From assembly GCA_965644315.1 (NCBI GenBank), contig CBFFRQ010000034.1, forward strand, positions 124,001 to 188,000: a stretch of DNA of 64,000 nt, written 5' to 3'. This document shows, in pieces, positions 12,001 through 57,821 of this stretch. Below the pieces are notes generated by a model. It made no database searches. It was not told where the DNA came from and was given only the letters and a program-made list of their open reading frames with translations. A program made the translations under genes and the position numbers. The first letter of the stretch is position 1. Each line of letters opens with the position of its first letter. Source of the DNA: Caecitellus pseudoparvulus. Taxonomy: Eukaryota > Protista > Bigyra: Bicosoecida.

Positions 12001-15000
12001 TGACAGGGCATCGAACGTGGCCGAGCTGTTGCCTCCGATGACTTGAGCGAGATCCCAAGCGGTCTGCACGCCAGGCTGCACGCTGCTTGCACTGGCGCCA
12101 GGATTGCCCCAGGCTTCGATGGTGTCAGCGACCAAAGCAGTCGCATTGGACAGCGCGCCGATGTAGCCATCGTAACTCACGATGGGCTCGCTCAGAGTTG
12201 CATCCTCGGGCGTTCCACTCGTCCACAGCACCATGGTACGCAGCACTGCCGCATGCAGCGACATGGAGGCAATGATTTCCCCACATCCCTGGGTTGTGCA
12301 GTCGGACTGCAGAACGCCCAGCGCCGATTCAGCCAGATCTGCCGAGCCTTGCAGCTCCAGCAGCTTCTTGTTGCCACCATCTGCAAGCTTCTTCAGATCC
12401 TTCACGTGGGTCTTCTTGCGGTCTTGCTTGTTCAGGAGCCCCAAGTTGTACTTGACCTGCGGTCCCAGACGCTCCATAAGGGGCACCGTCAAGTTGCGAG
12501 CTTGCTGGACGAGGGCAGTCAGCGACAGCATGGCGGCGTCCAGACTTGGCGAGAACGTTGCCAACTCCGATCGCAGAGCCAGAGCGCTCGCCTTGAAGTC
12601 AGACTCTGCTGCAGAAAGAGTGACCCGCACCGGTGCGACTGGCACCGCCCATGCAGCGGCGGCAGCCAAAGCCGGGGCATTCTCCGGCGCGAACTGCTGC
12701 AAGACCTGATCTTTCGTGCCTTCCAGCGTGTCTTGCGTTACTTGCAAATCCGCCAGTGCTTGGACCGCAGCGCGTGCAGCTTGACTGGCAGCCGACGCAG
12801 TCGCCCCGTGCAGCGCAAGCGACGAGCCAGCAGCACCAGCTGCCTGAACTGCCGCGTCCAGAACGTCGCTGGCTGCCCGCAACAGGGCAGGCTGCAGATT
12901 CCTCCACTGCTGCACCAGCGTGCTGTGGGTCCACTCGCGCAAGGCGCCCTCCAAGCGTGCCAAAGCTGAGCGAAGGGACGTGGCAGTGTGCAGAATACGT
13001 GCAGGCGCGCCGTCCACAGCAACAGGGGTGGAGAGGACACTGGCCCCAGACATGGCTTCCTCTGCTGCAGACAGCAAGGCCGCCGCTTGGCGGGCGACAC
13101 TGCGCAAGTTGAGAGAAGGCAGCGTGGCCAGCACAGAGCGCACGAGCGCCAGGGCATCCTCGGCGAATGCAGCGGCGGTTACGCGAAGCCCGTCAATGGC
13201 CACAAAGAGGGTATTGTCCAGGGCGCCACTTGCGAATGCCTCAGCTTGGACGGCAGCGGCCCAGTCTTCTGCAGCTGCCAGCGCAGATTCTGTGGAAGAC
13301 GCCAGGGACGCTTGCGCTGTGCCCAGTTGGTCGACGTAGCGCGGCCTGAACTCGGCGATGAGGGAGCCGACCAGAGCCCCGAACGGATCTGCCGCCATCT
13401 CTTCTGCTGTGCCCACTTCCAGAGTTGTCGCGTGGGTCTTGAACTCCACCATGGTGTCAGCTAGGAAGCCGTCCAGCGCTGCGAACTGGTCATTGTACGC
13501 GTCCAGCTCGTTGCCGCTGGCGCCGTTCATCACTTCCAGAGCACCAGTGACATCATCACCGATGACAGCGGCGAGGGTGCCAGCAATGTCGTCCAGCAGG
13601 GAACCCGATCCACTGAGCACCTTGTGCACAATCTGGATACCATTGCGAACCAGGGTTGCGTTGGACACCAGTCCGTCAGTGAACTCTCTCCCTCGCAAGA
13701 TGACCTTGTCCACGACATCCAGCACCGACAGCACCCGATCCCCGTATGACGTGATATTTGAGTACCACTCATTCAAATCGTCCAGGTGGCCCTGGATCAT
13801 CTCGATCACGGGGGGGTCTGCAATGTACTCCAGCTTCTCCTGCACCGCTGCCAGCTGGCCATCCACGGCATCAATGAACTCTTGCACCCGGAGAAACTCC
13901 AGTGCTTGATCCAGATATCCATCGACAATGGCCAGGAAGGCTTCCGTGTCTCGCAGGGTGTCGATGAAGTCGGAAAGGCGCTCAGAGTAGCCCACGAGCG
14001 TGTCATAAACTTTGTCGAAGACGGAGATACCCTTCCGCATGAGTTCCTCGACCTGCTCTGCGATGCCCAGCAGCTTCTCTGCGATAGACTTGACGCTGGT
14101 GATGATGTTGTCGGCAAAGTCGTTGAACTTGGCGATAAGGTCTCGCGGCACGAGGCCGATGGCTGAGAAGCCAAAGTTCAGAGCAGCCTTGGCGTCCAAC
14201 AGCACCAGCTCGAAGCGGAGCAAGTACGCAGAGACGCGGGCCGTGTTGAAGACGTCCAGCTCAAACAGCGCACCGAACAAGCTGAGGTCCAGCTCCACCG
14301 TGTCGCGCAGTTTGAAGCCAATGTACGCCCCGATGTAGGTGCTGCCAAACAACTTCTCCCACCCCTCGTCGATGCCGGTCTTGAAGTAGATCTTCGTGTT
14401 GCTGGGGTTCAACACCTCCAAGATGCGCTCCCAGATGGAGGTCAGACTGCGTCGAGCAGCCAAGACCCGGGAGCCCAGTGCTGGCGAGCCAGTCCAGGCC
14501 GCCACCCGACCCTGCATGGTCTCTGCACGCCGAGCAGGCACAGAGGCAGCCTGCACCAGCTCGTCAGCGTGCAGTGGCGCGTTGGCATCGGGCGCAGGGA
14601 GGTGCTTGGCCAGGACACGTGCGACGCTCTGCGCCATGGCCTGGTCGTGGGTGCACTGCGTGCGGCACTGGCGGTCGCAGCGGTCCAGGGAGCGATGCAC
14701 ACAAGGCGCGGTGCACAGGTCCACGCAGTCCTCCCAGTTGCGCAGGGAGCCAGCTTCCAGCATGCCTGCCAGAGCGGCTGTCGTGGCAGGCGTCAGGCGC
14801 CCAGCGGGGATGGCCTCCAGCGCTGCCACGGCGTGAGCACGCATGGCCTCGTCAGAGTCCTCAGCCACCAGCGTCTCCACCAACACCTCTTCCACGTTGA
14901 TGGCCAGAGCAGTCCAGTGCTCCAGGACGCTGAAAGCGTGCCGGCGCAGGGTGCGCTTGGAGTGTGTGAGGAAAGGCAGCACCCGCTCCTGCCGCCCCTC

Positions 15001-17393
15001 CACGCGCATGTTGCCGTACGCGTGCATGAGCGTGACGAGCCCAGACGCAGCATGGGCCGCGTCAGGCAGCCCCTCAGCGGCCCGCTGCAGAGGGTCCTCC
15101 ACGCCTCGTGCTGCCCGGGCAGCGGCGACGGGGTCAGGGCCCAGCGCCCCGCCCCCTGCCGCTGCGTGGCGCACGCCGGAAGCCTGCATCTCCCGCCGCA
15201 CAGTGTCCTGGCACAGGGACTGAATGCTGCGAGACAGCAGCGCGCGACTGGCGTTGGACGCGTGTTCGCCCAGACGCCGCCCAGCCATGAAGGACGCCTC
15301 GGCAGCGCCCAGCACGGCGGCATCGGAGCAGGCGGCAGCTGCTGCATCCTGCAGCTGTGCATCTCGTGCAGCCGCTTCATCTGCCAGTTTCAGCTCGGAA
15401 GCCAGGGTCTGCTTCAGGTCCTCTGTCCAGCTGGACCGCTGGGCAGGGGTGGCGTGCTCCCAGGCCTCTGCCGCAGCACGGGGATCAGCCCAGTGCCGCA
15501 GCCCCACCACCCACCGCCCAAGCTCAGACACGGACATGCGATCCATGATGTCCTGCGCCCCTTGCTCATACACTGCCCAAGACGCCTCGGCGTGCCCGTG
15601 CAGAGTATGCAGGATGGTCCACTCGTCGTCCAGTGCCCGCAACACTTCAGTGTGCATGGGGGAACCAGGCGGCAGCGTGGAGCCCATGGCGCCCAGTGCC
15701 AGCAGCAAGCGAGAGCGGTGGTACCAGTCCACCTCCTCGGCATCCAGCACTGCCAGCAGGCGGTGCAGGGTGCTGTCGGAGGGCTTGTCCAGGTGCATGA
15801 GGGCGAGGGCGATGTGGTTCACCAGCTCCTCGCTGGCGCCGTCCATGACCCACCGATCCTCCAGCAGCCCCACCAGGACATCCTGGCACGGCGCGTCACC
15901 CAGCGCTGCAACACCCCCCAGCAGGGAGTGTTGCACGGTGGCGGGCAGGGGCAGGAAGTCCTTGTGGGACGCCACCAGGCCCAGCACCTGCGCCTTCAGG
16001 TCCGAAGACAGCCGCATGGCCAGCGGCAGCTGGGTCGCACACTCGGCAGGCGAGGCGAGGGCGTCTGGGTTGCTGGCCGAGGCTTCAGCAGCATGCCGTG
16101 GTGGGCGGGAGGGCGCGCCCTTCTGCCCGCCGCGGCTGAAGCACTCGACGTAGTACCCCGCGTCGATCAAGCCAGCCATCACGCCGGCGATGTGAGGGCG
16201 CAAGCTCTCAGGCACTGCCTCCTCCATGTCAGAGTTGTCCACTGCCAGCTCAGCGGGGTGCATGCCCGAGCCATGTGCTTCATCCAGGTGGGGCGCATGC
16301 AGGCGGCGTGCCCCTGCCGCCAGCTCGTGCGGCAGCAGCGTCACGGCGCCAGCAAGCTGGTGCACGAAATCCGCAGGCACGGCGTGAAACGCCCGTTCCT
16401 CGGGAACCCGCCCTGCCAGCTCCACGTCGTCCGAGTGCAGCAGGGTGAAGTCAATGGTCATCGTCCACGGCTGCATGATGTCCCCCGTCGCTGCCTCGTC
16501 CACGCCGTGGTTGTCAAAGACGTGGTGGGGTCGATCGCCTCCGTGACTGTCTCGAGCCGAGTGCGGCATCTCAGCAGAAGCGCTGACCGTGGCACGCCCC
16601 GACACGATGCGCCACTGCCCCGCCGCCGACCGGACCAGCTCGTACGTAAACTCCTTGGCCAACAACATGCCATCGTGTACGTTCTTGCCTGGGCGCAAGG
16701 CACTCTGGTCCAGCGCCTTCACCACCGTGGCAGAGGAACCCTGCGCCTCGCCTGCCACGACACGGTACTGCCACACGCCGAGCCCCACGTCGCACATCTC
16801 CTCCGCGGACCACGTCTGGCCAGCCACAAAGGTCTCGGGCAGGGACACCTGCATGGAGGCCAGCAGCCCTCGCTTCCTGCGCAGCCGCGAACGAAACGTG
16901 GTGCAGTGCATGACGGCGCGTGCAGGCAGGGGCGAGATGGTGTGGCATCGCCCCCTCCCGGCGCCGCCCCCCATCGCAGCACGCACATGTTCAAGCTCTG
17001 TACTCGCTCATCTTCGTGCCCCATGAGCGTCACGTGGCCGTTCCCTGCACGCCACGCGACCAGGGGCAGCTCTTCATCAGGGCGCCCCTCGAAGGAGCCG
17101 TCTGGATCCGACACACGAGCCCACTGCGAAGCACTCTGCCGCTTCAACGGCACGCACTCCCGGGCCATGAACAGCTCCAGGCCGGGAGGGGATGCAGGGG
17201 AATCGTGTCCGTCCACGACGCTGGAGCTCCTGCCCCACAGGCACGACAAGCCAAAGGCGGAACCTCCTGCCCCGCTGCCGCCGTGCCTGCCTGCGTGTCT
17301 CAAGTTCCACTCGTACACTTCCACGCCCTGCGCTGCCCACAGCAGGCAGCAGCACGCCAGGAGCGCCAGTGGAAGGCGATTCAGTATGTTCAT
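1..17393 (-). CDS. Giant secreted protein, copy L (>=5,760 aa, 3' end outside window): signal peptide, vitellogenin/apoB-like LLT module, beta-rich segment, very long amphipathic/Ala-rich helical region
   Basis: ATG at 17393 (MNILNRLPLALLACCCLLWAAQG, signal-peptide-like). Exon 1 is 17393-16987, intron 16986-16877 (GTGCGT...GCGCAG, phase 2), exon 2 from 16876. The frame read at 16875, ~12400 and position 1 (...ADGVKGVQDFIKLMKNEGKA) is the same, and the ORF track lists no stop-terminated ORF in it. LLT-like motifs: SLNMKRGLLASMQV, EEMCDVGLGVWQY, LLLALGAM, LMHAYGNM, MRAHAVAAL. Confidence 0.85.
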
Positions 17394-17922
17394 TGCAGTT
17401 GGTTGGCTACAGCGCGTGCACGCGGCCTGGGTATGGCGAGCGCGCCTGAGGCAGCTGGCAGCAAACGCGCCCAGCGCCTTTCCGCTGTCCTCCCACACTC
17501 GAACACGGCACCGGCGCACTGAACGCACGCTAACGTCAGCGCGAGCGGGTCCTTGCGTGAGAATGAGGGTGGAACTCAGCTTGCACTGAGTGTGGTGTGT
17601 AATGGGTCCTGCGTCGCAGTGTCAGTCACTCCCGCGGCCTGACCTGGAGCACTCCTGGCGCATCACGGAGCAGCGCAATTGCCGCCGGCGGCCTAACTTC
17701 ACCAACCCACGCTTGTCAGCAGACGCTGGCCAAACGTGCGCACCGCACCGCTCAAAGCACAACTGCTGCTGCATGACTTGCTTGGGCAAGCCGTGGTCAG
17801 CCTCATTACCCCAGTTGTGCGTCTGTTGGTCGGGCAGGCGAACGCTTCCATCAGCGCGTGCCGCACTGCACCACCCTCGCACACGGGCCAGCCAGCCCCC
17901 GTGCCTCGGCCACCCACGGCAA
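14413..17922 (-). repeat. Left arm of ~3.5-kb near-identical inverted repeat (partner 54315-57821)
   Basis: The reverse complement matches 54315-57821 almost base for base (scattered SNPs, a 3-bp intron indel, and a more diverged patch at ~17760-17830). Paired ORF-track entries have near-identical translations, e.g. 16719..17528(-) and 54709..55515(+). Confidence 0.95.
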
Positions 17923-18060
17923 ACAACGCAGGCGAAGCATTCAGAGCATGGTATGCGCATGGAGCTCCTTCCGCTGTTCTCGGATAAGTATTAATTGAAT
18001 TCATAATCTGTGTAAGTCCAGGGCCCAGCACATGTGAGACCCCTTTATTTATTGTTTGCG

Positions 18061-19802: not shown

Positions 19803-19969
19803 CTGCTGTTGCCTCCCCCGCAGGGGGTGGCAAGCGGGGGTTCTGCAGGGAGGGAGGCGGGGCAGTGTCGCCTGGGGCGCACTCTTCACCTCGCCTCCCA
19901 TCCTCAGACCCTCACGTCGATGCCTCCTCTGATCTTCCTCCCTGACTTCGCCCGCTTCCTTTTTCTTTT
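19803..19969 (+). repeat. Ngaro split direct repeat A1
   Basis: 167 bp, appears identical to 25430-25596 (ctgctgttgcctcccccgcag...cttcctttttctttt). Confidence 0.95.
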
Positions 19970-19972
19970 GCC

Positions 19973-21961
19973 ATGGCCGCCCCTGCCCCGCTACCCCCCC
20001 TGGCTAGGGTCGAGGACCTTCTCCGGTTCTCGTCCCTGAAAGGCCTGGTGGCGTCGTACGAGGTCGAGGTCATACGGACCTGGGTCCAGACCTCGGCGCT
20101 CCTTGCCGATGTGCGTTCCGTAGGGAAGCACTATCGGCTGCGGCGCCTGGGGGGGGAGGACGGGAAGGAGCGGTTCATGGAGGCGGTGGAGCGGGCGGCT
20201 AGCCGCCGGCGCGCTAGCGCGCCGGCTCCGGCGCCTTCGGCCGCCCCCCTGCCGCACTCGCCTGAAGAGGCGCTTGCATTGTTCCTGGTTCCTCCCGAGA
20301 CCTTGCCGGAGGGCGTGGACCGCGCTCAGGCCGTCCGGACCTGTGCCAGGTTCGCTTGTGACCCCCAGCGGGGCTGGCGAACCTGGTCCCCCGAGAAGCT
20401 GGCCGCCTGGAAGACGGCGTGCCAGCTGCCCCCGGAGGTAACTGTGGAGGACCTGGAACAGCACTGCAAGGAAAGCGGCTGGTTGGATGAACCAGCGGCA
20501 AAACGTCCGGCCTTCTTTCCTTGGAACGAGGGGGAGGAAGGTTGGCGGGGCTGGGAGTCAGCTGGCACACCGGCCAATGTGCAAGTTGAGAAACCGGCCT
20601 CCGTGCCGACCGCGGAGGCTGCCGGTGTCGAGGAGGGGGGCACTGCATCCTCAGACACGCCCCAAGTCGCGCCACCGCCCCTGGCAGGCGCGGGTGGTCT
20701 GCCGGATGGGGCGGAAGCGCTCAGCATTGCGAGTACTTTTCCCGACGTCCCTCAGGATTCGGTCTTGCTCAGGCTAGGCGCATGGCGCTGGGTCGCCGCG
20801 TACCCCGGAGACGACGACAACGAGTTGCGCCAGCTCCTCGCCGCATTGGGTCGGGTGTTCCCTGAGCGTCAGGGCGCGTCGGTAATCGCTCCAATAGCCG
20901 CTTGCATGTTGGACTTCTGCAGAACCGGCCCGACCAAGCCGTCGGGCCCGATGGATACCGGTGCGTTCTTATGCGCAGGTCTGCCCGCCCCCCCCGCTCG
21001 CGCGTTGTCTACGCTTCCAGACTGGGTACAGCGCCCCTTACACGGGACGGACCTGGACGCGTCTGGGATTTCGATGGACGAAGGGCTCATGCTGGTGACG
21101 GACTTCGTGGCGGGGGAGGACGGTGGCGTCCGTGTCGTCCTGGACACAGAAGTGCTGCGGGCCGGCTGTGAACGCGGCGCCCTGCTGCGCTGCGTCATGA
21201 TGGGCAGCTATAAGGGCCGGTCCGTCTTAGCGTCCTTGCTGGGGAGGATTCTGGACTGTCGCACCACCGCGGACATGCTCCGGGCATGGCTCGACACAGT
21301 CTGGCTGCTCCCGGACAGTCTCATGTTCGCGGACACGCGAGGTTGGAGAAGGATGCTTTCACTCATTGTTTGGATCTCCATCGCATTGGAGGGCCTGGTG
21401 GCGATGGCGGGTAGCAAGCGCGCCTCGCGGATCCCCGACTCGGATGCGCGCTTGGCGGCGATGTGGGCCGACTCCATCAGGACAGAGTCAGCGCTCCTTC
21501 TCCCGGTCGCCCCCAGCTCTCGTTCTGCTCTGCTGCACCAGATAGCGGTGGAGGGGGCGGCGGCGCACTCGGCACCCCCGCCACCGTCTCCCCGCCCTCG
21601 CCGGTCCGAGGCACAACCGGCCGAGGGCACCAGGGGCGGACGCCGGCCCCCCCGAGGCTCGGTCGACGTGGCCGGCCCGGGAAGGGGGTCCCCACTCGGT
21701 GCCGACGACCCGCGCACTTTCGTTTGGTGCACGGCTTGTTCTTCCAGGTGCGCTACACATGCGCTCGAGGATTGTCCAGGCCTACGCGAGAAGGTTCAGG
21801 CCCTCGTGCGGGGTGGGGAGGCCAGCGGCCAGGAGGAGGCCCTCACTATTCTCCTCCGACGCGTCCGTGCCAAGATGCGGAGCAAAGGCGGTGAGTTCGC
21901 GCGAGAGTACGCGAAGCGCGAACCTAAGCTCGGCCTTCTCCTCGAACGTGTCCGCGCATAG
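19973..21961 (+). CDS. gag: Ngaro ORF1, Gag-like protein (662 aa)
   Basis: ATG immediately after A1. First-ORF position in the element. C-terminal Cys/His knuckle CTACSSRCATHALEDC. Ends in TAG at 21959-21961. Confidence 0.75.
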   Translation: MAAPAPLPPLARVEDLLRFSSLKGLVASYEVEVIRTWVQTSALLADVRSVGKHYRLRRLGGEDGKERFMEAVERAASRRRASAPAPAPSAAPLPHSPEEALALFLVPPETLPEGVDRAQAVRTCARFACDPQRGWRTWSPEKLAAWKTACQLPPEVTVEDLEQHCKESGWLDEPAAKRPAFFPWNEGEEGWRGWESAGTPANVQVEKPASVPTAEAAGVEEGGTASSDTPQVAPPPLAGAGGLPDGAEALSIASTFPDVPQDSVLLRLGAWRWVAAYPGDDDNELRQLLAALGRVFPERQGASVIAPIAACMLDFCRTGPTKPSGPMDTGAFLCAGLPAPPARALSTLPDWVQRPLHGTDLDASGISMDEGLMLVTDFVAGEDGGVRVVLDTEVLRAGCERGALLRCVMMGSYKGRSVLASLLGRILDCRTTADMLRAWLDTVWLLPDSLMFADTRGWRRMLSLIVWISIALEGLVAMAGSKRASRIPDSDARLAAMWADSIRTESALLLPVAPSSRSALLHQIAVEGAAAHSAPPPPSPRPRRSEAQPAEGTRGGRRPPRGSVDVAGPGRGSPLGADDPRTFVWCTACSSRCATHALEDCPGLREKVQALVRGGEASGQEEALTILLRRVRAKMRSKGGEFAREYAKREPKLGLLLERVRA

Positions 21962-24139: not shown

Positions 24140-25257
24140 CGCGGCTCGTTCGGGCCATCCCGCTAAACGGCGTCGGAAGCTGTATTCGGCACAGCTTAGC
24201 ACCACGGACGCAACAGAAGTACGCCAGGCTCCTAGCGTCCTTCCTGCGCTTCTGTACACGCGGGGAACATAGAGGACCGAGGGCGCCGGGCCCGTTGCGG
24301 GCGAGCAAGGTTATCGAGTGGGCCCGACACCAAGTGACGACGGGAGCCTGCTCATCACGGTCGGCCGGCGGCAAGCTCAAGGCCCTGCTAGCCGCCGCGA
24401 ACTCATGGTGCATCCCAGTCGAGAACCTGAGCAGAGTGGGCATGACGCTCACCAAGCTTACGAAGGCGCTGGCCCGGATGAAACCGAGCCCGCCAGTGCA
24501 GCACCGTGAACACGTGCCTATGAGCAAGCTTCGTAAAACGGTGGACGCTCTGGGCGGACGCCCAAAGCTACAAGCCTGCCTGCTGATTGGGTTCTGGGCC
24601 ATGATGCGCGCTGGCGAGCTGCTGCACCTGGAATGGGCCGACCTCACCTTTACAAGACGTGACGGCGTATGGGTGGTGACGGGCAGGCATGGGGACAAGA
24701 CACATCACCACCGGGACAGGCAATGGTCCGTCCCCAGGTCCCCAGAGTGGGCGCGCGCGTTCGACCACCTCAGGGCAGAGGCAGCCCGAGGAAAAGGTCG
24801 GGTGCTATCGTCCCAGGACGGGGCGGACATAACCGCAGCGCTGAAGATGCACACCGGAGTCGGCCTCGGAGGCCTGCGGCCAGGCGGCCACAGGTTCTGG
24901 GTCCAGCAAGGGCTCCCAGCGGCGGCCATCCACCAACAGGGAGGGTGGGCCCCGACCTCGAACGTTCCCAGCCTCTGCTACTGGGGTCGGTCCGGGGTAG
25001 GACACAGTCTGCTTCGGGACGCCATGCTGGGCAACAGGCTGCGTACTCAAGATCCGGGCCGCAGCGAGGCTGCTTCACGGGCGAGGGGCATAACACAGGG
25101 GGAGGGGTACTCAGAGGACCGGGTCCCTGAGCCCCACCCCTTCGTCCGGCACCGCACGGCCAAGGAGAGGAGAGGCGAAGATCGCCCTCCCCTGCGCCGA
25201 CCGATGGCCAACTACGGCCAGTGGCCCCCCCGAGGGGGGGGCTGGGTGCAAGGGTGA
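24067..25257 (+). CDS. Ngaro ORF3, tyrosine recombinase (open frame; true start unresolved)
   Basis: N-terminal SLAPRTQQKY...FLRFC segment typical of DIRS/Ngaro YRs. Catalytic-type motifs MMRAGEL (R), DKT (K), GGLRPGG (xxxR), GGW (W), LCYW (Y). Overlaps the pol end in the -1 frame. Confidence 0.88.
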   Translation: MRHDSRTGSPPPHAGWIVVKEEQLARLVRAIPLNGVGSCIRHSLAPRTQQKYARLLASFLRFCTRGEHRGPRAPGPLRASKVIEWARHQVTTGACSSRSAGGKLKALLAAANSWCIPVENLSRVGMTLTKLTKALARMKPSPPVQHREHVPMSKLRKTVDALGGRPKLQACLLIGFWAMMRAGELLHLEWADLTFTRRDGVWVVTGRHGDKTHHHRDRQWSVPRSPEWARAFDHLRAEAARGKGRVLSSQDGADITAALKMHTGVGLGGLRPGGHRFWVQQGLPAAAIHQQGGWAPTSNVPSLCYWGRSGVGHSLLRDAMLGNRLRTQDPGRSEAASRARGITQGEGYSEDRVPEPHPFVRHRTAKERRGEDRPPLRRPMANYGQWPPRGGGWVQG

Positions 25258-25263
25258 ATGATG

Positions 25264-25431
25264 TGGGATGGACGCCTTGACACCCTGGGGCCACCGGGTA
25301 CGGGACCCCGCCGACTGCGGCACGCCGGTGCCGAGCGCGGGGTCACCGTGGTGTCGGGCGGTCCGGCAAGGATGCATTGGCAACAATGCATTCAAAATAC
25401 CACACCACCCGCTCGAGCGTCCAGCAGAACT
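25264..25431 (+). repeat. Ngaro split direct repeat B1
   Basis: 168 bp, appears identical to 25616-25783. Confidence 0.95.
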
Positions 25432-25596: not shown

Positions 25597-25615
25597 TTTT
25601 TCCTTCTTCCCTCCT

Positions 25616-44900: not shown

Positions 44901-47900
44901 CAGGGCCCGGCCTGGTGTGGCAGCACACGAAATGGGCGCCAGGCTGGCGTCCTGCACTGCCGGCCCAGCTGTGGCGAGGCAGCGGGAAGCGCCAGCGCTG
45001 TGCACGTAGGAAAAGCCTGGCGGGCAGGCAAACGGCGGGCGCTCACACAGGAAGGGGTGCTCCTCAGTCTGCAGCCCAGTGGTCAGCGTGGGCGCCACGT
45101 CACCCGGAGCCGGTGCCGCCAGTCGTGCGCCTGACAAAGCAGGCGCCAGGAGGTAGTTCGTGGCGCCCCATGGGAGCGCGCTGACGCCAAGCACAGCGGC
45201 ATGCACTGCATGTGGGTGGCTCGTGGTGCTCCACGCGCCACTGCCGTCACTGGACGCCCCCACCCAGCATGTGGCAGAGTCGAACGCCGCACACAGGCCC
45301 GCCGCGGCAGCTGCTATGACAGGCTCAGTCAGGGACGTGAGCAAGTGGCCACCCCCCGCGTCGCACGTCGCAGCGGCAGCTGTAAACGTGGCCGGTCCGT
45401 GCACTGACGCACACGTGTGGCGCGCCCCGTCAGCGCTCAGCAACAAGGTGGAACCAGGTGGGCAGGAAATGACAGCCTCGGCCGACCGTGCATCCAGGGC
45501 GTCCTGGATCAGGCTGCCGCTGCAGGAGGCCTCATCCGCAGCGGACGAAATAGCTTGCACGCCCAGTCGCAGCTGCAGCGCGTCGCACGTGACGTCAAAG
45601 TCCGCCAGCGTTACTGCGCCGTGCAGGCCTCCGGGCATTGCAGGGTTGGTCTCCAACAATGCCGCCCCAGCCACTGCTGTGCCAGTGTCCAGCGTCTTGG
45701 TGTGTGCAGGGGCCAGCAGACCTGCAGCGGCAAAGGCAGGCGTGACAGGCTGCAGCGCAGAGTAACCGGGGCACGTGGCGATGCTGCCGTCACACGTGAC
45801 GTGCAGCGAGCACTGCGACACGCTGGCGCTGCAGACTTCGTTGTCACCTGCAGCGAACAGTGTCTCAGTGCAGCCGCCGTCCCCATTGCAGACGGATGCA
45901 GCGTGGCAGTCCTGAGCAGCGCACGTGTATGGCGTGCCAGAGCACACACCTGCGTCACAGCGGTCACCGAAGGAGCAGTCGTCGCCATCGTCACACGCGA
46001 GGCCAGCTGGGCGGCTGCTCCACGCGGTGGGGTCCAGCGTCACGTCGCAGTACTGGCACTGGGGGCTGGCTGGGTTCGCCTCGCCGTGCGCCACCAGCGT
46101 CCCGCCAATGTTGCACGCGCAGCTCTTGCCCGAAGGCACGAGGTCCACTACCCCCCCAGCGAAGCCAGGCTTCAGGGCACACCCGCCGTTGCCACTGGTG
46201 CCGGGCGTGCCATCGCACACTTCACAGTCCTGGGCGGGGTCAGCTGTGAACTCGAAATTCAAGCAGTGCGAGTACGGCGTGCCCTGGCACAGCCCACCTG
46301 CACTGCACGCGTCGCTGTGAGTGCACGCCAGCTCATCGTCACACCCGTACCCTTCGCCCCGGAAACTCCACGCGTAGTATCCGCCTGAGCCAGCCGGGTC
46401 GCAGAAGTAGCACTTGGAGTGCACGTCTGCGGCGTTGTCACGTGGTCGGTCCGAGAGGTACGCGCGGCACTGCCGCACGCCGTCAAAGTCGAAAATGGAA
46501 CAGTCGTCAGGCTCAGCGCACTGTGTGCAGCGGAAGGACATGGCCACCAGCCCCTGCCGCCCAGCCTCGCCTGCGCCCAGTGCTGACCGCAGTGCGTTCA
46601 GCTCTGCGTCTGCACTGGACGAGGGCTGCGCCGTCGTGCCAGCGACAAGAGTGGGGTCTGGGTGCCGGGCACCCGTGACGGGGTGAGGGGGGTGGCTTGC
46701 GGAGTCCAGGATGACGTCAGTCAAGAAGAACCCCGTGCCGCCGCCGCCGCCACTGGCATGGTCGGCAGAGGCCACCCCAGACCCGCCGCCGTAATACCCG
46801 CCACCTCCATCAGCTGCGTGCACCTCGCACGCTCCCCCTGAACAAGTGCTATCCGTGACCCGTCCGCCGTGTTGCCGTGTCCCCGGCCGCCCAGCAGCCT
46901 GAGACGTTGCCGTGGTCCCAGTGGCAAAGCCAGCCGTGCCGCCAAAGGCACTCTCACCGCCACCCCCGCCAGGGGCCTGTGCAGTGGAGGAGGCACTGGT
47001 GCCGGTCAACCCCCCCCCCGCGCCGCCACCAGAACACGTGGCCAGGCCAAAGCCACCGCCACCTCCGCCGCCAGCCACCAGCCACTCAGACAGCGCCCCT
47101 GTGCTCCACAGGGCGGAACGCTCACCCCCCCCTCGGTTCACGGCCAGGGAGGGGGTGAAGCCTGTTGCGGCAGGCGGGGCAAAGGGCAGCCCTGAGCCAA
47201 AGCCAGTGCTGCCATTGCCTGCCAGGGCGCGTGTTCCGAATGGCGACGCCACTTGGGCGTCGAACACCATGCCCTGCGTCGGCGCGAACTTGTCCCCACT
47301 CGCACCCACCTCGACCGTGAGGGGTGTGCCGGGCGTCAGGCGCAGGCGTGCGGTGGCCAGGCCGCCAGAACCCCCCCCGCAGCTGGCCTGGTCGGCGGGT
47401 CCACCCCCAGCCCCCCACATCGCCACATCCACTGCCAGGGCACCTGCTGGGCTGCGCAGCGTGTGCAGGCCTGGCCCGGCCAGGGTGAGGGAGGACGACG
47501 GTTCGCAGATGGGTGCGAAGGGCAAGCTGCGCAGGGTGACTTGCCCTCGCAGGCCGCCCAGGCTGTCGCTGGAGCCTGCTCCAGGGGCGCGCTCCAGGTC
47601 ACCGGCGGCCCCGGGGAACTGAGCCAACCCGCCGACCAGCCGCGTGTACTGCAGGCCACTGCCCAGGAAGCCGCTGCCGCCGCCGGCAGCCGATGCGACG
47701 GTGGACGAGATGGCAGCCCCTGCGCCACCCCCCATGTACCCCCCTCCTCCCGACGGCCCTGCCGCGTGCACTGCAGCCGTGTTGCAGCCAGGCACGCCCC
47801 GCATGCCACGGCCGCCCGTCGTGCCCCACAGACACGCGTCAGTGGAGGTCAGGGTGCCGCTGGCATCAGCCTTCAGGGCCCAGCCACCCGCCCCCTTTCC

Positions 47901-50900
47901 GCGGCGGGGGGAGCTCGTGCCTGGCGTGGAGCCGCCGGCCCCCTGGAAGGCGAACCAGGCCGTGCCGAACGCGACGGGGGCGGCTGGCGTGCCACCCTCC
48001 ATGCCGCCGCCTGCCCCGCCTGGGACAGTGGAGCCCCCCCCTCCACCCCCTGGCGCCACCAGCAGCTCATTGGTGAAGCTGAGGGAGTTAGACGCGCCAG
48101 ACGGCAGCAGAATGGCCGAGGCGTCACCGCCTGCAGCGGAAGCGGCCAGGGCCGAGTCAGCCACAGCGCCGTGCGTCGCCGCGGCTGCGGCGTTGACCCA
48201 CCCTGTCGCACTGCCCCCGACGTGCACGAAGAACACCTGCCCGGGCTGCACAGGCCGCATGGCACCGGCGTGGCCGCCGCCGCCCCCCAACGGCCCCACA
48301 CCGGTGCCAGCAGGCGACACCCACGCGCCCCCTGCGGCGCCCCAGGCCTTGAACGACAGCCACGCCGTGCCAGCCGGCACGGTGAAGGCACACGTGCTGG
48401 AGGGCTGTGTGAAGTGCCAGGTGGCGCCATCTGCCGCGGGCGGCACGTCGCAGGGCGGGATGGCTTCACACACCGCGGGAGCCGGGGCGGGGGCAGGGTC
48501 TTCCTCGTCCGCCCCCGCTGCCTTCTCAGGCGCCGGCACGAGGGGTTCCCCTGTCGCCAGTCCGGCGCCCTGCCACTGCACTCCGGGCGTGTCGTACCCC
48601 GGCACTGGCTGCGTGCAACCGGAGGTGCAGAAGCCAAAGAGAGACCCGCCACGCAAATGCTGGCCACTTGCTCGAGGGGCGGCCGTGTCCACCGCCAGCT
48701 TGGACGCGTCGCCGCCGTCCACGAACTGCCACCCAGCCGTGAAGGAGCGGAGGCGCAGGCCCAACCACAGCGCAGGCGCGTGCAGCACAGTGTCTGCCAT
48801 CCACTCCAGCTCCACTGCATCGTGTGGCGTCCACAGGTGGCTGTGGGGGCCGGCCGCAGCGCACACGGCCTCCGCATCAGCCATGTCGTCCGAGTCCACA
48901 TCGTGCAGCCGCAGGCAGGTGCCGGTGATGGGAGACCGCACCCACGAGCCATCGGGGCAGGGTGCGTGCTCGTAGCACAGCGTGTGGGCGCGCTCAAGAC
49001 AGCCCGTGTCAGCGGCTGCCGCGAGCATGCCCGCATCAAGCGGCGTCGCGCCTGAGGCCCAAGGGAGACTCTCGGCGCCACCCACAGTGAAGCACGACGC
49101 AGTGTTCTGGGAGGTCGTGGACGCAGAGGTCTGCACGCGCTGCCACTTGGACAGTGCCTCTGGTGCCCGCAGCAGGCGAGGCCACTGCACGTCAAACGTG
49201 CCGCTCTCACGCGCAGCGTCCAGCCACATGCCGGGGCCTGACGGCTCTCTGCGAAGGTACTGACCGGTCAGCCACGCGGCATCTCCCGCGTGGAAGAGAG
49301 TGGGCAGGCCTTCGCTGGAGCTGCGGGCATCGCAGGTCGCAGATGCGACCGCCTTGGTCACTTCGGTCGCCGTGTCCAGGTGGAAGCACGCGCCGGAGAC
49401 GGGGGAGATGATGCCGTCACAGCCGGGGTAGGCGGGGCGCGTGCAGAGGAAGTGCACGTGGGGATCGGTGGGGCCTGGAACCGCATCACAGGGCACAGGG
49501 ACCAACCGCCGGCTGTCGGCTTGGATGGCGGCACAGGCGCCAGAGTCCAGGTTGGCGGGTGCAGCACCGGCAGCCCACGCGTCAGCCGGCACTGCCGGGC
49601 CGGTGCCCCACACCCACTGGCCCTGCCCAGATGACCACTGTGCGCCAATGTGCATGAGCTGGGACCCCGCCACACCCTCTGGCCAGCGCAGCAGGTCCAG
49701 CCACAGCCCTGCAGGTCCCACGGCCGACGCCGTGAGCAACGGGGGTGCAGCCAGCGCCCCCCCAGCCTCGCGGGAGCAGGCAGCTTCTGCGCTGAACCAG
49801 GAGTGCCGGCGCTCAGGCCACCCCTCACTCCCCGCAGCGTACGGGCGCCAGCACTGTCCATCGCCTGGGTGTCGTGTGAAGCCGCCTGGACAGCCAGGCA
49901 GCACGGCACAGAGGGCCGCAGCACGGCGGTGGGCACAGGGGGCTGAGAACACTTTCCCTGTCGCGCCCAGAGCGACACAGGTCGGCCCGCTGGGCTCACC
50001 GTATGCGAACGGCGTGTCGCCTGCCGTGTCCTTCCAGGCAGGCCACTCCAGCCCACCGCCCCCACTGGTGTCCTGCGCCGCCGTCCAATACGCTGCCGCA
50101 CCGAAGGACTGCAGTGCCTCAGCCAGGGTGGGCAGCTCCTCCGCGATGGTGGGCCCAGACCACAGTGTGGCGCCTGGCCAGGCTGCCTGACAGGTGGCCA
50201 CCGCCTCCGGCTGGCTCAGCAGTGCGTCCTCCGCTCCCAGCACCGGCAAGACACAGGTCCCAGAGAGGGGAGAGCGGCTCCACCCGCCAGGGCACTGCGT
50301 GCCTGCGTGGAACTGCGCGAATGGCGCCGTGACTGGCGCCACCACAGGCATGGCCTGTGGCTGGGCGTGGCCCACCATGCACAGCGGCAGGGCAGTGTGG
50401 CTGCCACAAGACACGGACGCAATGGTGACCTGCCCAGCCTCCAGCGCAGTGCACAGGTCCGACGCACCGTCAGGCTGCCCCGCACTCCACAGGGGCGATG
50501 CAGGCGACAGCATGGGGTCTGACGCGGCACCCTCATCTGCGTGCCACTTGCCGGCAACTCGACTGCGCCAGCCCAGCCAGGCGCTGCCGCCGCCGCCCCA
50601 CACGCTCGCACGGGCCAGCAACCACTCTGCCTCCGCAGGGTTGGCCGCTGACGCCAGCTGCGCGCCAGGCACTGCGTCAGAGCACGCCTTCTGTGCGGCG
50701 AATCGAGACACGGCAGTGGCACCAGCAGGCACGCCATAGCACCTGCCGTTGGCGGGTGAGCGCTCAAAGCCAGCGGGGCAGGCGGGAGTTGTGGTTGGCA
50801 AGTCCATGTCCATGGCGCAAATGGTGCCGTAAGCACCTGACGGACCATGCACTGCGTGGATCACGCCGCCGCCCGCCGCGGCTGTGCCGGTCGGGGCGTT

Positions 50901-53900
50901 GTCCAGCCACAGCACAGCATAGTCGTCCAGAATGGCAGGCGTGCTCTGCCAGTGCGGCGCAGCGGCGTCCAACAGAGTGTGCGGGTCCACCGCAGACGCC
51001 GCGCCAAAGCGAGCCCCCCACTCGTACACTCCTTTGACCGCGTTCAGCTGTGCGCCGAGCCAGAAGGAGCCGTCCACCTTGTGCGCCTGGTCGATGACGA
51101 AGTGCATCTCCGCAGTCGAGGTGAAAGTGGCGGGGTAGCCTTTCACGCTGGCCTCCAGGCACTTTTGCGGTGCTTCGGAATGTGCCACAGCCTCCGTGGA
51201 CACGAAGAAACAGCGGTGGCTGTACGGGCTGGATGTCCACCCAGCAGGACACGACGTGAGGGGTTTCGGTACCTGGCACGCGACCGCGTCCACACTGACT
51301 GGCGTGTCTGCAGTTGTTGTGGCGGCATCACACGGAACGGCGAAAGCGGCTGAGTCACTGGCCACGACGCAGCGCTCAGTGTCTAACCCTCCTGGGTGCC
51401 CCCACTCTGGCGCTGACGCGTGCACGCCCCACACAGCGTCGTATGCCGACCCGTCCATCCACGCGAACATGCCAGTGCCAGGGTGCCGCAGCCCCCCCAC
51501 AAACGTGACGTCTGAGCCCAGCTCCGTGCGCAGCTGTCCGAACGAGGCAGCCGAGGTGCTTGCCAGGTCCACTTGCCCAGCCACCGTGCCATCCATGCCT
51601 GGCAGCCCATGGCACACGTCACGTGCCTCCTCTGCCGTCATGGAGCCTGCGACACTCTGCGTCTGTACGCACGAGTGCCCAGTGTCCACCGTTCCCACGG
51701 GGCACTGCCACGCAGATGGACCCAGGATATTTGCCGTACTTGAGGACGGGGCCTTGCACAGGGCCCCGACCTCACTGAGTGCGCAGCGCTTGGGGCTGGC
51801 CGCATACGCGGCAGCGTCACAGTCGCATTCGATGTCATTCACGCGGATGTCTCTGGGAGCAAGAGGGGGGGGGGGGGGGGCTGTGAAGGGGAGAAGAGCC
51901 CCCCTGGCGTAGGCAGCAAGACGCACGGAAAGTCTTTGCCAGTGGTGGTGAGGCAGTGCTGGCCTGTTGAACCTGCCCGGACTGTGTTGGTGGGGTTCGG
52001 GCCTTCCCACCAATTGGCCGGGTATGACCCACTCGTGCCCAGTTCAGACGTCACCCCTGGGAAGCGGTCATCGCCCCACACCCACGTGCCTTCTTCAGCT
52101 TCGTCAGTGGCGCCCAGCCAGCAGTACCCCCGTTCAGGAAGAGCGTTCCTGTGCAAGGAGAATGGGCAAAGTGCGAAGCGGTCAAGTAGAGTCAATCGGT
52201 GGGCGACCGTGACACGCCCAAAGCCGCGCAACTCACATGGAACACATGCCAAACAGGAACTCCAGCTCATCTGTGCTGCCCACTGTGGCTAGCTTTGCGG
52301 TGGCGTCAGCCGCGGCACACTCCACGTCACTGGACGGCTGATCCAGCCCCGCGGCGAGGAACTTGTAGCAGGCGGCAGGCTGGTTGCCAATGCTGGCGCG
52401 CACGAAGCCAGGAGGGCAGTCAGACGGCTGCAGCCTGCATGTGAACTGCTTCGGCGTGCCGCAGTCCGCGTCGGAGAGCTGGCCGTTGCTCTGCAGTGCA
52501 GCACAGTCTTCAGAGCCAGGGGCGCCGGACTCTGTGCGAGGGGGGGAGGGGTAAGTGCATGTGTGCAGGTGCCAGAGCAAAATGCGGCATTCAGGGTGAC
52601 GACGCACCCCAGCAACCCGAGTTGATCTGTGGTTCGCAAAAAGTCGTGCTGTGGCCGTCATGCCACGTCCAGAGGGGGGCAGATGTGGCCCGGCTCATGC
52701 CCACCCAGCACTGCGACAAGGGGAGAGGGGTAGCAGACACACGGTGCAAATCAGTAACGCGGGCATGGGTTGCACATCGCGCGTGCAGTGCCTCACATCT
52801 TGTCCAGTGCTGGCGCCCTGGCACAGTCCTGAGAGGAAGGTCTGCGTTGGGGACGTGAAGAAAGATACCATGTATCCGCCCTCGCCCTCACAGTGTGTCT
52901 GCGCGTCGGCAAAGGTCTTCGCCTCCGGCACGTGCTTGAAGCAGCCGACATCTCCCACGCCGTCGTCGTTGAAGGTCCAGCCCGCGGGGCAGACGATTCC
53001 CGCCCCGTCGCTGCCTGAGCAACCAGCCGTGGAAAGGCCTGTCGTGTCCCCAAAGCGCCCCTGGGGACACGCTGAGCACGCAGTCTGCCCAGGCGCATCC
53101 TGGTACTTGCCCACTTCGCTGTGTGGGGCAGTTTGGTGTGCGAGGCGTGACGAGGCTGCGATCGCAGCAGAGCATGTGTCGAACTCACCAGGCTGTGCAC
53201 ACCTCAGTGCCGGGTGTGTCCGAGTAGTACCCGGGGGGACACTCAGTGCAGGCGTCATTCAAACCAATGTACCACCCCGCGAAGCACGCTTCACAGGCTG
53301 TGGCTCCTGGGTTGGACGTTGTGGCAGCGGGACACCTGCGCGAGAGAGCAGCAGACCCCATGGCTGATGCTCGGTCAGCTGTGCGTAGAAGCACGACAAG
53401 CTCAGACGCACGATTCACAGGCTGTGGCACCTCCAATTTCCATGTACGTATCGGCGGGGCAATCGGTACACGAAGTTGCGCCGGTGGACGCTTGGAAGCG
53501 GCCTGCGGGAGTGCGGAAATTGACGCTCAAGCACACCCTCAACGCCTACGCGCGCGGGGTAACGCACCCGCAGCACACTGTCCACATGCTGACATCCCTG
53601 ATGAAGCTTGAAATGACCCTGTGGAGTAGGGGCAGTGAGGTGTCGCAGCGTATCCAAGGGGGAGCGTCGGTCAGGGAGCAATCGCAGCGTTTCGCACACA
53701 CCAGCATCGCAGTCTGTGCACTCTGTGGACTTCTCGACGGCGGAGAACTTGCCTGCAGGACGGGACGAAACATGTGAACGCTAGACGCCATATTCGCAGT
53801 ACATCCCTGACGACTCACCGCTGGCACAGTCGTGGCAGTGGTCACCGTCGCCGTATGTGCCGCGAGGGCAGTCCAGGCATGTGGTCGAGGGCAGATCGAA

Positions 53901-54256
53901 CTGCTGCCCGGCATCACACAGCTGCAACTTGCGTGCACTGAGAGGATGCCCTGTATTCGCATCACTGCGGAGGAGAAGGAGGCTTCGTTTGCCCTTGGCA
54001 GGGCGGAAGCCTGAGGCTTGGCAGGGGGAACGCACTTTTCCAGCCGCCTGTCCAAGGCGCCGCTGGCTACGGCAGTGCGAAGAAGAAGGGCAATGACAAG
54101 CACAATGGGGAGCATGCCGGCTCGCCCATAGAGCCGTGGAGCCTCCTGGGCTTCCCTGTGGGAAGGCATTGCAGGGACCCCGCTACGCCGCTGTTGCAGG
54201 CGACGCGGCGTCTCAACTTTGGCAGGGTCTGCTGTCCCCTGTGCTGCTGCATTCAT
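35940..54256 (-). CDS. Giant secreted lectin-like protein (~5,800-5,900 aa): GCC2/GCC3 Cys repeats, ~12 C-type lectin-like domains, two Gly-rich domains, CDDGxxC Cys repeats, long array of Fn3-like DxTPP repeats
   Basis: Start at ATG 54256 or 54115 (MLPIVLVIALLL, signal-like). Ten short phase-compatible GT..AG introns between 54035 and 51853 give CPRGTY/CPPGYY/CPQGRF repeats and two CTLDs. The terminal exon 51852-35940 corresponds to the 5357-aa ORF. CTLD signatures: CPxGW..C, AxxxC, WLG, QPD/EPS. Gly-rich domains start WGAAGG and WGAGGG. Fn3-like repeats: DxTPP-G-V-DG...W.GF.D.ES...Y. No C-terminal TM segment seen. Confidence 0.88.
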
Positions 54257-54843
54257 CTTGCTGACGACACAACCGGAGGAAAACACCAACAGCGCACTTT
54301 AAGCGCGGCAGTTATTGCCGTGGGTGGCCGAGTCACAGGAGCTGGCTGGCCCGTGTGCGAGGGTGGTGCAGTGCGGCACGCGCTGATGGAAGCGTTCACC
54401 TGCCCGACCAACAGACACCCTGCTGGAGGAACTAGCCTGCCCACGGCTCGCTCAAGCAAGTCGTGTAGCAGCTGCCGTGTTGTGGGCGATGCGGTGCGCA
54501 CGTTTGGCCAGCGTCTGCTGACAAGCGTGGGTTGGTGAAGTTAGGCCGCCGGCGGCAATTGCGCTGCTCCGTGATGCGTCAGGGGTGCTCCAGGTCAGGC
54601 CGCGGGAGTGACTGACACTGCGACGCAGGACCCATTACACACCACACTCAGTGCAAGCTGAGTTCTACCCTCACTCTCACGCAAAGACGCGCTCGCGCTG
54701 ACGTTAGCGTGCGTTCAGTGCGCCGGTGCCGTGTTCGAGTGTGGGAGGACAGCGGAAAGGCGCTGGGCGCGTTTGCTGCCAGCTGCCTCAGGCGCGCTCG
54801 CCATACCCAGGCCGCGTGCACGCGCTGTAGCCAACCAACTGCA
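54257..54843. promoter_or_regulatory. Putative bidirectional promoter between the lectin gene and LLT copy R
   Basis: The two giant genes start head-to-head ~590 bp apart. About 530 bp of this spacer is duplicated upstream of copy L. Inferred from layout only. Confidence 0.5.
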
Positions 54844-57821
54844 ATGAACATACTGAATCGCCTTCCACTGGCGCTCCTGGCGTGCTGCTGCCTTCTGTGG
54901 GCAGCGCAGGGCGTGGAAGTGTACGAGTGGAACTTGAGACACGCAGGCAGGCACGGCGGCAGCGGGGCAGGAGGTTCCGCCTTTGGCTTGTCGTGCCTGT
55001 GGGGCAGGAGCTCCAGCGTCGTGGACGGACACGATTCCCCTACATCCCCTCCCGGCCTGGAGCTGTTCATGGCCCGGGAGTGTGTGCCGTTGAAGCGTCA
55101 GAGTGCTTCGCAGTGGGCTCGTGTGTCGGATCCAGACGGCTCCTTCGAGGGGCGCCCTGATGAAGAGCTGCCCCTGGTCGCGTGGCGTGCAGGGAACGGC
55201 CACGTGACGCTCATGGGGCACGAAGATGAGCGAGTACAGAGCTTGAACATGTGCGTGCTGCGAGAGGGGGCGGCGCAGGGAAGGGGCGATGCCACACCAT
55301 CTCCCTGCCTGCACGCGCCGTCATGCACTGCACCACGTTTCGTTCGCACTTGCGCAGGAAGCGAGGGCTGCTGGCCTCCATGCAGGTGTCCCTGCCCGAG
55401 ACCTTTGTGGCTGGCCAGACGTGGTCCGCGGAGGAGATGTGCGACGTGGGGCTCGGCGTGTGGCAGTACCGTGTCGTGGCAGGCGAGGCGCAGGGTTCCT
55501 CTGCCACGGTGGTGAAGGCGCTGGACCAGAGTGCCTTGCGCCCAGGCAAGAACGTACACGATGGCATGTTGTTGGCCAAGGAGTTTACGTACGAGTTGGT
55601 CCGGTCGGCGGCGGGGCAGTGGCGCATCGTGTCGGGGCGTGCCACGGTCAGCGCTTCTGCTGAGATGCCGCACTCGGCTCGAGACAGTCACGGAGGCGAT
55701 CGACCCCACCACGTCTTTGACAACCACGGCGTGGACGAGGCAGCGACGGGGGACATCATGCAGCCGTGGACGATGACCATTGACTTCACCCTGCTGCACT
55801 CGGACGACGTGGAGCTGGCAGGGCGGGTTCCCGAGGAACGGGCGTTTCACGCCGTGCCTGCGGATTTCGTGCACCAGCTTGCTGGCGCCGTGACGCTGCT
55901 GCCGCACGAGCTGGCGGCAGGGGCACGCCGCCTGCATGCGCCTCACCTGGATGATGCACATGGCTCGGGCATGCACCCCGCTGAGCTGGCAGTGGACAAC
56001 TCTGACATGGAGGAGGCAGTGCCTGAGAGCTTGCGCCCTCACATCGCCGGCGTGATGGCTGGCTTGATCGACGCGGGGTACTACGTCGAGTGCTTCAGCC
56101 GCGGCGGGCAGAAGGGCGCGCCCTCTCGCCCACCACGGCATGCTGCTGAAGCCTCGGCCAGCAACCCAGACGCCCTCGCCTCGCCTGCCGAGTGTGCGAC
56201 ACAGCTGCCGCTGGCCATGCGGCTGTCTTCGGACCTGAAGGCGCAGGTGCTGGGCCTGGTGGCGTCCCACAAGGACTTCCTGCCCCTGCCCGCCACCGTG
56301 CAACACTCCCTGCTGGGGGGTGTTGCAGCGCTGGGTGACGCGCCGTGCCAGGATGTCCTGGTGGGGCTGCTGGAGGATCGGTGGGTCATGGACGGCGCCA
56401 GCGAGGAGCTGGTGAACCACATCGCCCTCGCCCTCATGCACCTGGACAAGCCCTCCGACAGCACCCTGCACCGCCTGCTGGCAGTGCTGGATGCCGAGGA
56501 GGTGGACTGGTACCACCGCTCTCGCTTGCTGCTGGCACTGGGCGCCATGGGCTCCACGCTGCCGCCTGGTTCCCCCATGCACACTGAAGTGTTGCGAGCT
56601 CTGGACGACGAGTGGACCATCCTGCACACTCTGCATGGGCACGCCGAGGCGTCTTGGGCAGTGTATGAGCAAGGGGCGCAGGACATCATGGATCGCATGT
56701 CCGTGTCTGAGCTTGGGCGGTGGGTGGTGGGGCTGCGGCACTGGGCTGATCCCCGTGCTGCGGCAGAAGCCTGGGAGCACGCCACCCCTGCCCAGCGGTC
56801 CAGCTGGACAGAGGACTTGAAACAGACCCTGGCTTCCGAGCTGAAACTAGCAGATGAAGCGGCTGCACGAGATGCACAGCTGCAGGATGCAGCAGCTGCC
56901 GCCTGCTCCGATGCCGCCGTGCTGGGCGCTGCCGAGGCGTCCTTCATGGCTGGGCGGCGTCTGGGCGAACACGCGTCCAACGCCAGTCGCGCGCTGTTGT
57001 CTCGCAGCATCCAGTCCCTGTGCCAGGACACTGTGCGGCGGGAGATGCAGGCTTCTGGCGTGCGCCACGCAGCGGCAGGGGGCGGGGCGCTGGGCCCTGA
57101 CCCCGTCGCCGCTGCCCGGGCAGCACGGGGCGTGGAGGACCCCCTGCAGCGGGCCGCTGAGGGGCTGCCTGACGCGGCCCATGCTGCGTCTGGGCTCGTC
57201 ACGCTCATGCACGCGTACGGCAACATGCGCGTGGAGGGGCGGCAGGAGCGGGTGCTGCCTTTCCTCACACACTCCAAGCGCACCCTGCGCCGGCACGCTT
57301 TCAGCGTCCTGGAGCACTGGACTGCTCTGGCCATCAACGTGGAAGAGGTGCTGGTGGAGACGCTGGTGGCTGAGGACTCTGACGAGGCCATGCGTGCTCA
57401 CGCCGTGGCAGCGCTGGAGGCCATCCCCGCTGGGCGCCTGACGCCTGCCACGACAGCCACTCTGGCAGGCATGCTGGAAGCTGGCTCCCTGCGCAACTGG
57501 GAGGACTGCGTGGACCTGTGCACAGCGCCTTGTGTGCATCGCTCCCTGGACCGCTGCGACCGCCAGTGCCGCACGCAGTGCACCCACGACCAGGCCATGG
57601 CGCAGAGCGTCGCACGTGTCCTGGCCAAGCACCTCCCTGCGCCCGATGCCAACGCGCCACTGCACGCTGACGAGCTGGTGCAGGCTGCCTCTGTGCCTGC
57701 TCGGCGTGCAGAGGCCATGCAGGGTCGGGTGGCGGCCTGGACTGGCTCGCCAGCACTGGGCTCCCGGGTCTTGGCTGCTCGACGCAGTCTGACCTCCATC
57801 TGGGAGCGCATCTTGGAGGTG
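54315..57821 (+). repeat. Right arm of ~3.5-kb near-identical inverted repeat (partner 14413-17922)
   Basis: See left arm. Coordinate sums are constant (72237 upstream of the intron indel, 72234 downstream). Confidence 0.95.

Follow-up and report, generated by a model that had tools for sequence, protein, structure and literature searches.

Probable gene conversion between inverted copies of a giant gene for a putative lipid transfer protein precursor, with an edge beside a predicted cleavage site

The stretch of Caecitellus pseudoparvulus contig CBFFRQ010000034.1 analysed here (64,000 nucleotides; hereafter, the window) contains two giant genes, L and R, that share a nearly identical 5' part, diverge over the rest of their length and encode putative secreted precursors related to large lipid transfer proteins (LLTPs). 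The host genome is GC-rich and eukaryotic, with short introns. Comparison of the window with itself by BLAST yields a single inverted match (13763-17922 against 58471-54315; 4166 bp, 94.8% identity) with inner ends 36.4 kb apart, so that the inverted pair noticed in a preliminary description of this DNA is real. One gene begins in each arm, and both genes point outward; as that description also had it, both long frames leave the window, L after 5669 codons (minus strand) and R after 2923 codons (plus strand). Each gene starts with a signal-like N-terminus and has a 407-nt exon 1 followed by a phase-2 GT-AG intron, a splice model that is supported by an outgroup locus (L001), in which the intron acceptor lies in the same place and phase. 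The features of the two genes are listed below, together with a giant partner gene next to R.

13763-17922, minus strand: left arm of the inverted duplication (self-BLAST, identity profile)
54315-58471, plus strand: right arm of the inverted duplication (self-BLAST, identity profile)
17394-17922, minus strand: upstream DNA of L, common to R 54315-54843; the likeness ends at the outer end (23/100 beyond)
17748-17820, minus strand: diverged in-register patch with 21 differences in 73 bp (R 54417-54489); flanks 96-99% identical
16987-17393, minus strand: L exon 1, with the ATG at 17393, a signal-like peptide and the beginning of the predicted N-terminal sheet
16877-16986, minus strand: L intron, 110 nt, GT-AG, phase 2 (phase kept in L001)
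1-16876, minus strand: L exon 2, 5625 open codons, leaving the window; head, sheet, amphipathic helices, Ala-rich stretch of ~4200 residues and second amphipathic segment
54844-55250, plus strand: R exon 1, with the ATG at 54844
55251-55357, plus strand: R intron, 107 nt
55358-64000, plus strand: R exon 2, 2880 open codons, leaving the window; GC content at fourfold sites (GC4) of the body 0.50
14413-16875, minus strand: homogenised coding head, exon-2 codons 1-821 (R 55359-57821); predicted beta strands, then alpha-solenoid
14449-14454, minus strand: Arg-Arg codons, exon-2 residues 808-809 (R 57780-57785), predicted convertase site
14161-14394, minus strand: predicted long-strand beta-sheet, residues 828-905
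13780-13884, minus strand: probable second short conversion tract, codons 998-1032 (R 58350-58454), with 32 of 35 codons identical
35940-54115, minus strand: giant partner gene, head-to-head with R, likely ATG at 54115

From the upstream end of the arms (17922/54315) to 14413/57821, L and R are 96-100% identical per 100 bp, with the exception of the 73-bp patch; the final exact run stops at 14413/57821, exactly the break coordinate given in the preliminary description, and past it identity falls abruptly to 70-82% per 100 bp. The near-identity reported there, non-coding and synonymous sites included, holds at ~99% but is not complete, with four differences in exon 1, 22 in the exon-2 head, seven plus a 3-nt indel in the intron and 31 in the 529 bp of upstream DNA. 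Exon-2 codons 1-821 differ by 19 synonymous and three replacement changes (proportions of synonymous and nonsynonymous differences, pS and pN, of 0.029 and 0.0017, respectively); over the next 215 codons, pS is 0.50 and pN is 0.15, and beyond approximately codon 1080, pS is saturated and protein identity is 20-30%. Synonymous divergence thus follows the predicted course, close to zero and then rising to saturation, although the homogenised head spans 957 codons rather than the ~990 originally proposed. The upstream DNA, exon 1, the intron and the 821 codons were homogenised long after the remainder of the genes had diverged: neutral sites are homogenised and the bodies are saturated, in agreement with the initial view of an old duplication whose 5' part was later made uniform by conversion or segment replacement.

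The differences between the heads are strongly biased to synonymous sites (pN/pS of 0.056; p=6e-9 against neutral), which shows that purifying selection has acted on both heads ever since their last homogenisation. The same bias argues against a collapsed repeat. An assembly artefact, in which one arm would be a collapsed or misjoined copy or haplotype, has to be considered because near-identical 3.3-kb repeats are hard to assemble and the assembled sequence alone was examined; however, both frames also cross the break without indels and keep their register past it, where the proteins are 72-80% identical, and the outer flanks of the arms are unrelated genes, so that we assign this explanation a probability close to negligible. 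Selection alone was also considered as the cause of head identity and was rejected because neutral sites (intron and upstream DNA) are homogenised whereas the most conserved domain, the predicted sheet, has diverged. This sheet, which follows the break, is the best-conserved part of the family (36-43% identity to outgroups, compared with 31-33% for the head overall), and yet L and R are only 72% identical over residues 822-990; in the tree of the sheet, L and R are sisters (support 98/99).

Within the arms, the pattern looks like a mosaic. The 73-bp patch is embedded in near-identical upstream DNA, codons 998-1032 are again near-identical past the break (naive p of 2e-6; p=0.013 after scan correction), and the differences within the head are mildly clustered (p=0.012). 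The main edge of near-identity is sharp at neutral sites and lies within older in-register homology, as expected of conversion. Non-allelic gene conversion appears to be the best mechanism because homogenisation extends to the upstream DNA and the intron, its pattern seems patchy, and the region that the family conserves best has diverged. A single recent replacement, whereby the 5' 3.5 kb of one gene was copied once onto the front of an old paralogue without any recurrent conversion, would account for the one sharp main boundary, the fairly even 1% divergence along the head and its uniform, L-like composition, but several tracts or ages are suggested by the upstream patch, by the second tract, by the higher divergence of the intron (7/107) and by the clustering of differences; we consider this scenario plausible but unlikely. 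The donor of the head was more probably of the L type because the GC4 of both heads (0.75-0.76) resembles that of the L body (0.69) rather than that of the R body (0.50); directly past the break, the values are 0.80 in L and 0.68 in R. The GC4 of the R body (58455-64000; ~1850 open codons) is the lowest among the genes measured in the window.

What kind of protein is being homogenised is indicated mostly by its relatives. A full scan recovered 30 distant relatives, the best at 31-33% identity. The model of the exon-2 head consists of low-confidence N-terminal strands, a confidently predicted alpha-solenoid (~214-760), the long-strand sheet (828-905) and then helices, and its top Foldseek match is microsomal triglyceride transfer protein (MTP), albeit weak (E 5.7e-4). 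Searches of the PDB sequences with single proteins were blank; with profile A1, MTP and lipovitellin appeared at E 0.05-0.06 only, and with profile A2 nothing was found; word-index homologue searches with the head, whole-length L or the alignment were blank or returned HEAT repeats only. Among the aligned relatives, however, 12 of 31 match Vitellogenin_N at E<=0.01, and the helical part accounts for most of these matches. The clearest link is a coral protein of 5019 residues (P0084, CAB3990220.1) that connects to the window sheet at E 3e-12 and matches Vitellogenin_N at 54.9 bits, above the cut-off and with the N-sheet included in the match; the top nine structure matches of its model are all LLTPs (best E 5e-13), with MTP, lipovitellin, vitellogenin and apoB in the lead. 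The domain order of the large lipid transfer (LLT) fold, that is, N-sheet, alpha-helical solenoid and long-strand sheet, is found in the head model and in the structure matches of the coral relative. LLTPs share 22 conserved motifs (N1-N22); in the window protein, one N-sheet-like motif spans the intron, as judged by eye only, and exon 1 shows no significant BLAST match to the coral relative. Full-length relatives have the architecture of head, amphipathic helices and Fn3 arrays; neither DUF1081 nor VWD domains were detected in them or in the window parts of L and R, the C-termini of which lie outside. Taken together, the signal-like N-terminus, the domain order of the model and the LLTP matches of the relatives agree with the secreted LLT-type head of the preliminary description, and we file the protein as a putative outlying LLTP branch, placed via its relatives, and not as an apolipophorin or a member of the subfamily of apoLp-II/I and apolipocrustacein (apoCr).

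The coral relative, an LLT and Fn3 protein, bears the annotation Rad50 ATPase, apparently through a misreading of its amphipathic helices. Several other relatives extend as single open reading frames (ORFs), from 13038 onward for 10166 residues in L009, from 11594 onward for 7583 residues (with faint Fn3) in L010 and from 13912 onward for 5974 residues in L007, so that the family includes proteins of more than 11,000 residues. At L002 (5620-10146), an LLTP-type gene is seemingly interrupted by ~4.5 kb with an opposite-strand ORF of 1036 amino acids (no Pfam match), and Ala/Ser-rich coding resumes at 10147.

A dibasic pair directly precedes the sheet in all relatives that span this position (28/28, against a background of 28%), as RR in probable protists and as RXKR in animal-type sequences. 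In L and R, RR occupies exon-2 residues 808-809, and identity ends 12 codons later, at 821. ApoLp-II/I and apoCr are cleaved at a dibasic site that lies within their LLT module (PMC1783640). The preliminary description counted the whole LLT module in the constant part, but this does not hold, given that the constant part ends before the sheet, just after the dibasic site. Because identity ends just past RR and before the sheet, the constant part seems to match the predicted N-terminal cleavage product, an apolipophorin-II-like chain of ~920 residues, although this correspondence is suggestive only. Further RR-L motifs are present at 54044-54052 (minus strand), after the signal-like peptide of the partner, and twice in the head of both L and R (exon-2 residues 190 and 533), the first being a by-eye position match to a second furin-type site of animal relatives.

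The explanation that we favour, with a probability of about 0.65, is that non-allelic gene conversion has recurred between the inverted paralogues and acts on an N-terminal chain that is interchangeable. An old inverted duplication would have been followed by at least two tracts of conversion between the arms, the donor more probably being a head of the L type. The precursor would be cut at the conserved Arg-Arg by a kexin/furin-type convertase, yielding an N-terminal chain (N-sheet plus alpha-solenoid, apolipophorin II-like) that could be interchanged between L and R, and a copy-specific C-terminal chain consisting of the sheet, amphipathic helices, a long Ala/Ser-rich spacer and probably Fn3 repeats. 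Conversion would be tolerated across the interchangeable chain and mostly not past it.

Several observations weigh against this explanation. The RR site of the window has no Arg at P4, as the strict furin consensus would require, whereas animal relatives carry the full RX(R/K)R; the closeness of the break to the cut site is expected by chance with a probability of ~2.5% for one landmark and 12% for five; and the second near-identical tract falls within the predicted C-terminal chain. The compositional signal of the donor would be mimicked by GC-biased conversion, and the head differences lean that way, though only at p=0.12. With respect to the protein family, the TM-score of the window head in Foldseek is just 0.21-0.25, and an exon-by-exon Pfam search yielded no LLT match for the window protein, Vitellogenin_N (PF01347) included. 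Finally, scans for relatives found nothing above ~45% identity to window proteins and no sister strain or species to compare, and the metagenome, genome and viral contig scans for close relatives added nothing new; exact look-ups of six ORFs of the window gave no match either.

Past the head, homology between the L and R bodies is significant to approximately exon-2 residue 1680 (z=10), and beyond it z is ~1. The proposal that the bodies align only by scattered Cys and Trp anchors is accurate with respect to Cys, the best-kept residue in the forced alignment (14/26), but Trp (7/26) is not special. Outgroup bodies align to neither L nor R (z below 2.5) and lost alignability as fast as the L and R bodies did; they cannot tell whether L or R is slower or ancestral. 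Body composition tracks GC content, R being Ser-rich and L Ala-rich. Residues 5280-5622 of L align weakly with residues 1071-1397 of one full-length relative, which implies ~4200 additional residues, rich in Ala, that separate two amphipathic segments of L. The L body also contains a Thr/Ser/Gly-rich low-complexity stretch (~5100-5450, minus strand; ~exon-2 residues 3760-3860), possibly a glycosylated linker. The bodies thus probably differ mainly through age and weak constraint, as would be expected of a long spacer.

The initial comparison of the pair with diversified surface or effector families, taken here as a family of many bodies on a shared head that would serve to evade predators or viruses, draws on the secreted giants, the common head and the bodies that are just 20-30% identical. 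It is not borne out: there are only two copies in 64 kb and no second head in the stretches of the outgroup loci examined, body dN/dS is unmeasurable, and the outgroup bodies, which are equally fast and equally unalignable, and a composition that follows GC are features of a weakly constrained spacer. No evidence of diversifying selection in the bodies or of further copies was found in the 64-kb window, where body pS is saturated, and we give this idea a very small probability.

The gene that lies head-to-head with R starts 729 bp from the R ATG (likely ATG at 54115, minus strand) and has several 5' introns followed by an open frame of more than 5300 codons; its layout comprises a signal-like start, Cys-rich repeats, a C-type lectin, a Gly-rich region, a Cys-rich domain and an Fn3 array. 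In five distant loci (L001, L005, L007, L008 and L010), an LLTP-type gene is divergent from a giant gene with the Cys-rich domain of the window partner (E 1e-15 to 1e-26); the L001 partner additionally matches the lectin region of the window partner (E 4e-29), and two of the five outgroup partners carry C-type lectins and EGF. At L009, a divergent giant is present, with no match to the window partner within the stretch examined. A check for scaffold gaps that covered L001 and L005 found them at the partner region of L001, and L005 is gap-free. Because the head-to-head arrangement recurs in the five distant loci, the pair is likely to be old and the position of R ancestral, with L, located just beyond where a kinase gene has its 3' end, as the extra copy. 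The partner probably works jointly with the LLTP-type protein. The synteny suggests that the two could be co-expressed from the shared upstream DNA and contribute to a secreted lipid-associated coat or particle; quite probably, and leaving any switching aside, microbial eukaryotes share a widespread two-gene module in which the giant precursor of LLTP type and the giant protein with lectin, Cys-rich and Fn3 parts are transcribed head-to-head and form one secreted structure.

The same geometry would permit crossovers in the inverted heads to flip the 36-kb block with the frames intact, which would hand the partner to L, so that the partner, which lies inside the block between outward-pointing genes, could face with its shared upstream DNA either of the two oppositely oriented cassettes with shared 5' ends, and homogenisation would be a by-product. 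Such a switch is faintly favoured by the GC4 of the partner (0.69-0.73), which matches the L body, unlike the adjoining R body; on the kinase side of the block, GC4 drops to 0.57-0.64. However, a flip may change little because ~530 bp of common upstream DNA accompany each copy, the 22 head differences persist, and no recombinase site or second orientation was seen, one sequence being unable to show switching. We therefore regard the switch as highly unlikely, and the same applies to a two-gene module extended by LLTP duplication and head recombination into a eukaryotic inversion switch that selects which body is paired with the partner.

The remainder of the window encodes other elements. A spliced protein kinase gene (18061 to ~19530, minus strand; Pkinase E 2e-29) has an AATAAA ~125 bp ahead of the start of the L arm. 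A complete Ngaro-type retrotransposon (19803-25786, plus strand) encodes a gag-like ORF, a reverse transcriptase (E 9e-14) and a weak tyrosine recombinase match, and is framed by split direct repeats that are 99-100% identical (A1 19803-19969, B1 25264-25434, A2 25430-25596 and B2 25616-25786); it looks recently active, and its structure agrees with that of the Ngaro elements described in Cafeteria (PMC8547959). The metagenome, genome and viral contig scans revealed no new copies of it. A predicted membrane protein (27263-28780, plus strand) with a signal-like start and a C-terminal hydrophobic segment contains approximately seven Pro-rich tandem repeats of 63 bp (27902-28335, 97%). Two ankyrin-repeat ORFs follow (29288-33367 and 34350-35180, minus strand), the longer of which shows a recent 819-bp tandem duplication in its coiled-coil tail (29307-30083 and 30126-30902, 99.5%). 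Rfam and tRNA searches of the window gave no matches.

With respect to the conversion pattern, the nearest known case is the RH2a/RH2b pair of P. falciparum, adjacent duplicated genes for large secreted proteins that are identical over most of their length and differ at the C-terminus (PMC3769340), with observed conversion between the genes (PMC10919680) and coordinated expression (PMC1937010). The shared portion is ~90% in RH2a/RH2b but does not exceed roughly one third of R and one sixth of L in the window, where the genes belong to an unrelated family, lie 36 kb apart with other genes between them and have the boundary at a predicted cut site. As a protein, the closest parallel is with apoLp-II/I and apoCr, likewise giant secreted precursors with an N-terminal LLT-like module and a dibasic site within it (PMC1783640). 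Unlike these, the window protein, in which sequence identity to them is not directly detectable, comes from an apparently protist host and has a head-to-head lectin partner; furthermore, no DUF1081 or VWD is seen, and the full-length relatives end in Fn3 arrays. MTP and lipovitellin, the best structural matches, are weak for the window head and strong for the coral relative. MTP, at ~890 residues, stays in the endoplasmic reticulum, whereas the window-type proteins exceed 5700 residues and have a long Ala/Ser-rich body. The arrangement of cassettes also recalls sapA of Campylobacter fetus, where an invertible segment lies between cassettes of opposite orientation, each with a conserved 5' end and a variable 3' body. 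The presence of several sapA copies and of recombinants in C. fetus has been confirmed (PMC4943207). That system is bacterial, with approximately eight copies, one promoter and demonstrated switching, whereas the window has two eukaryotic copies, each with its own upstream DNA, known from one sequence.

The DNA mechanism, conversion between paralogues, is already known and ordinary. Its setting gives it wider interest: the conversion edge beside a predicted cut site offers a natural test of whether selection halts tracts at subunit borders. The head-to-head partner is conserved while kept at just 20-33% identity, which provides a testable protein pair. LLTPs have been treated as lipid-transport proteins of animals (PMC1783640), and in the literature searched, a partial collection, we found no description of this LLTP-type branch or of the conserved pairing with the partner. 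An apolipophorin-like giant that is predicted to be cleaved, occurs in probable protists and has a relative in coral would bear on the origin of animal lipoproteins.

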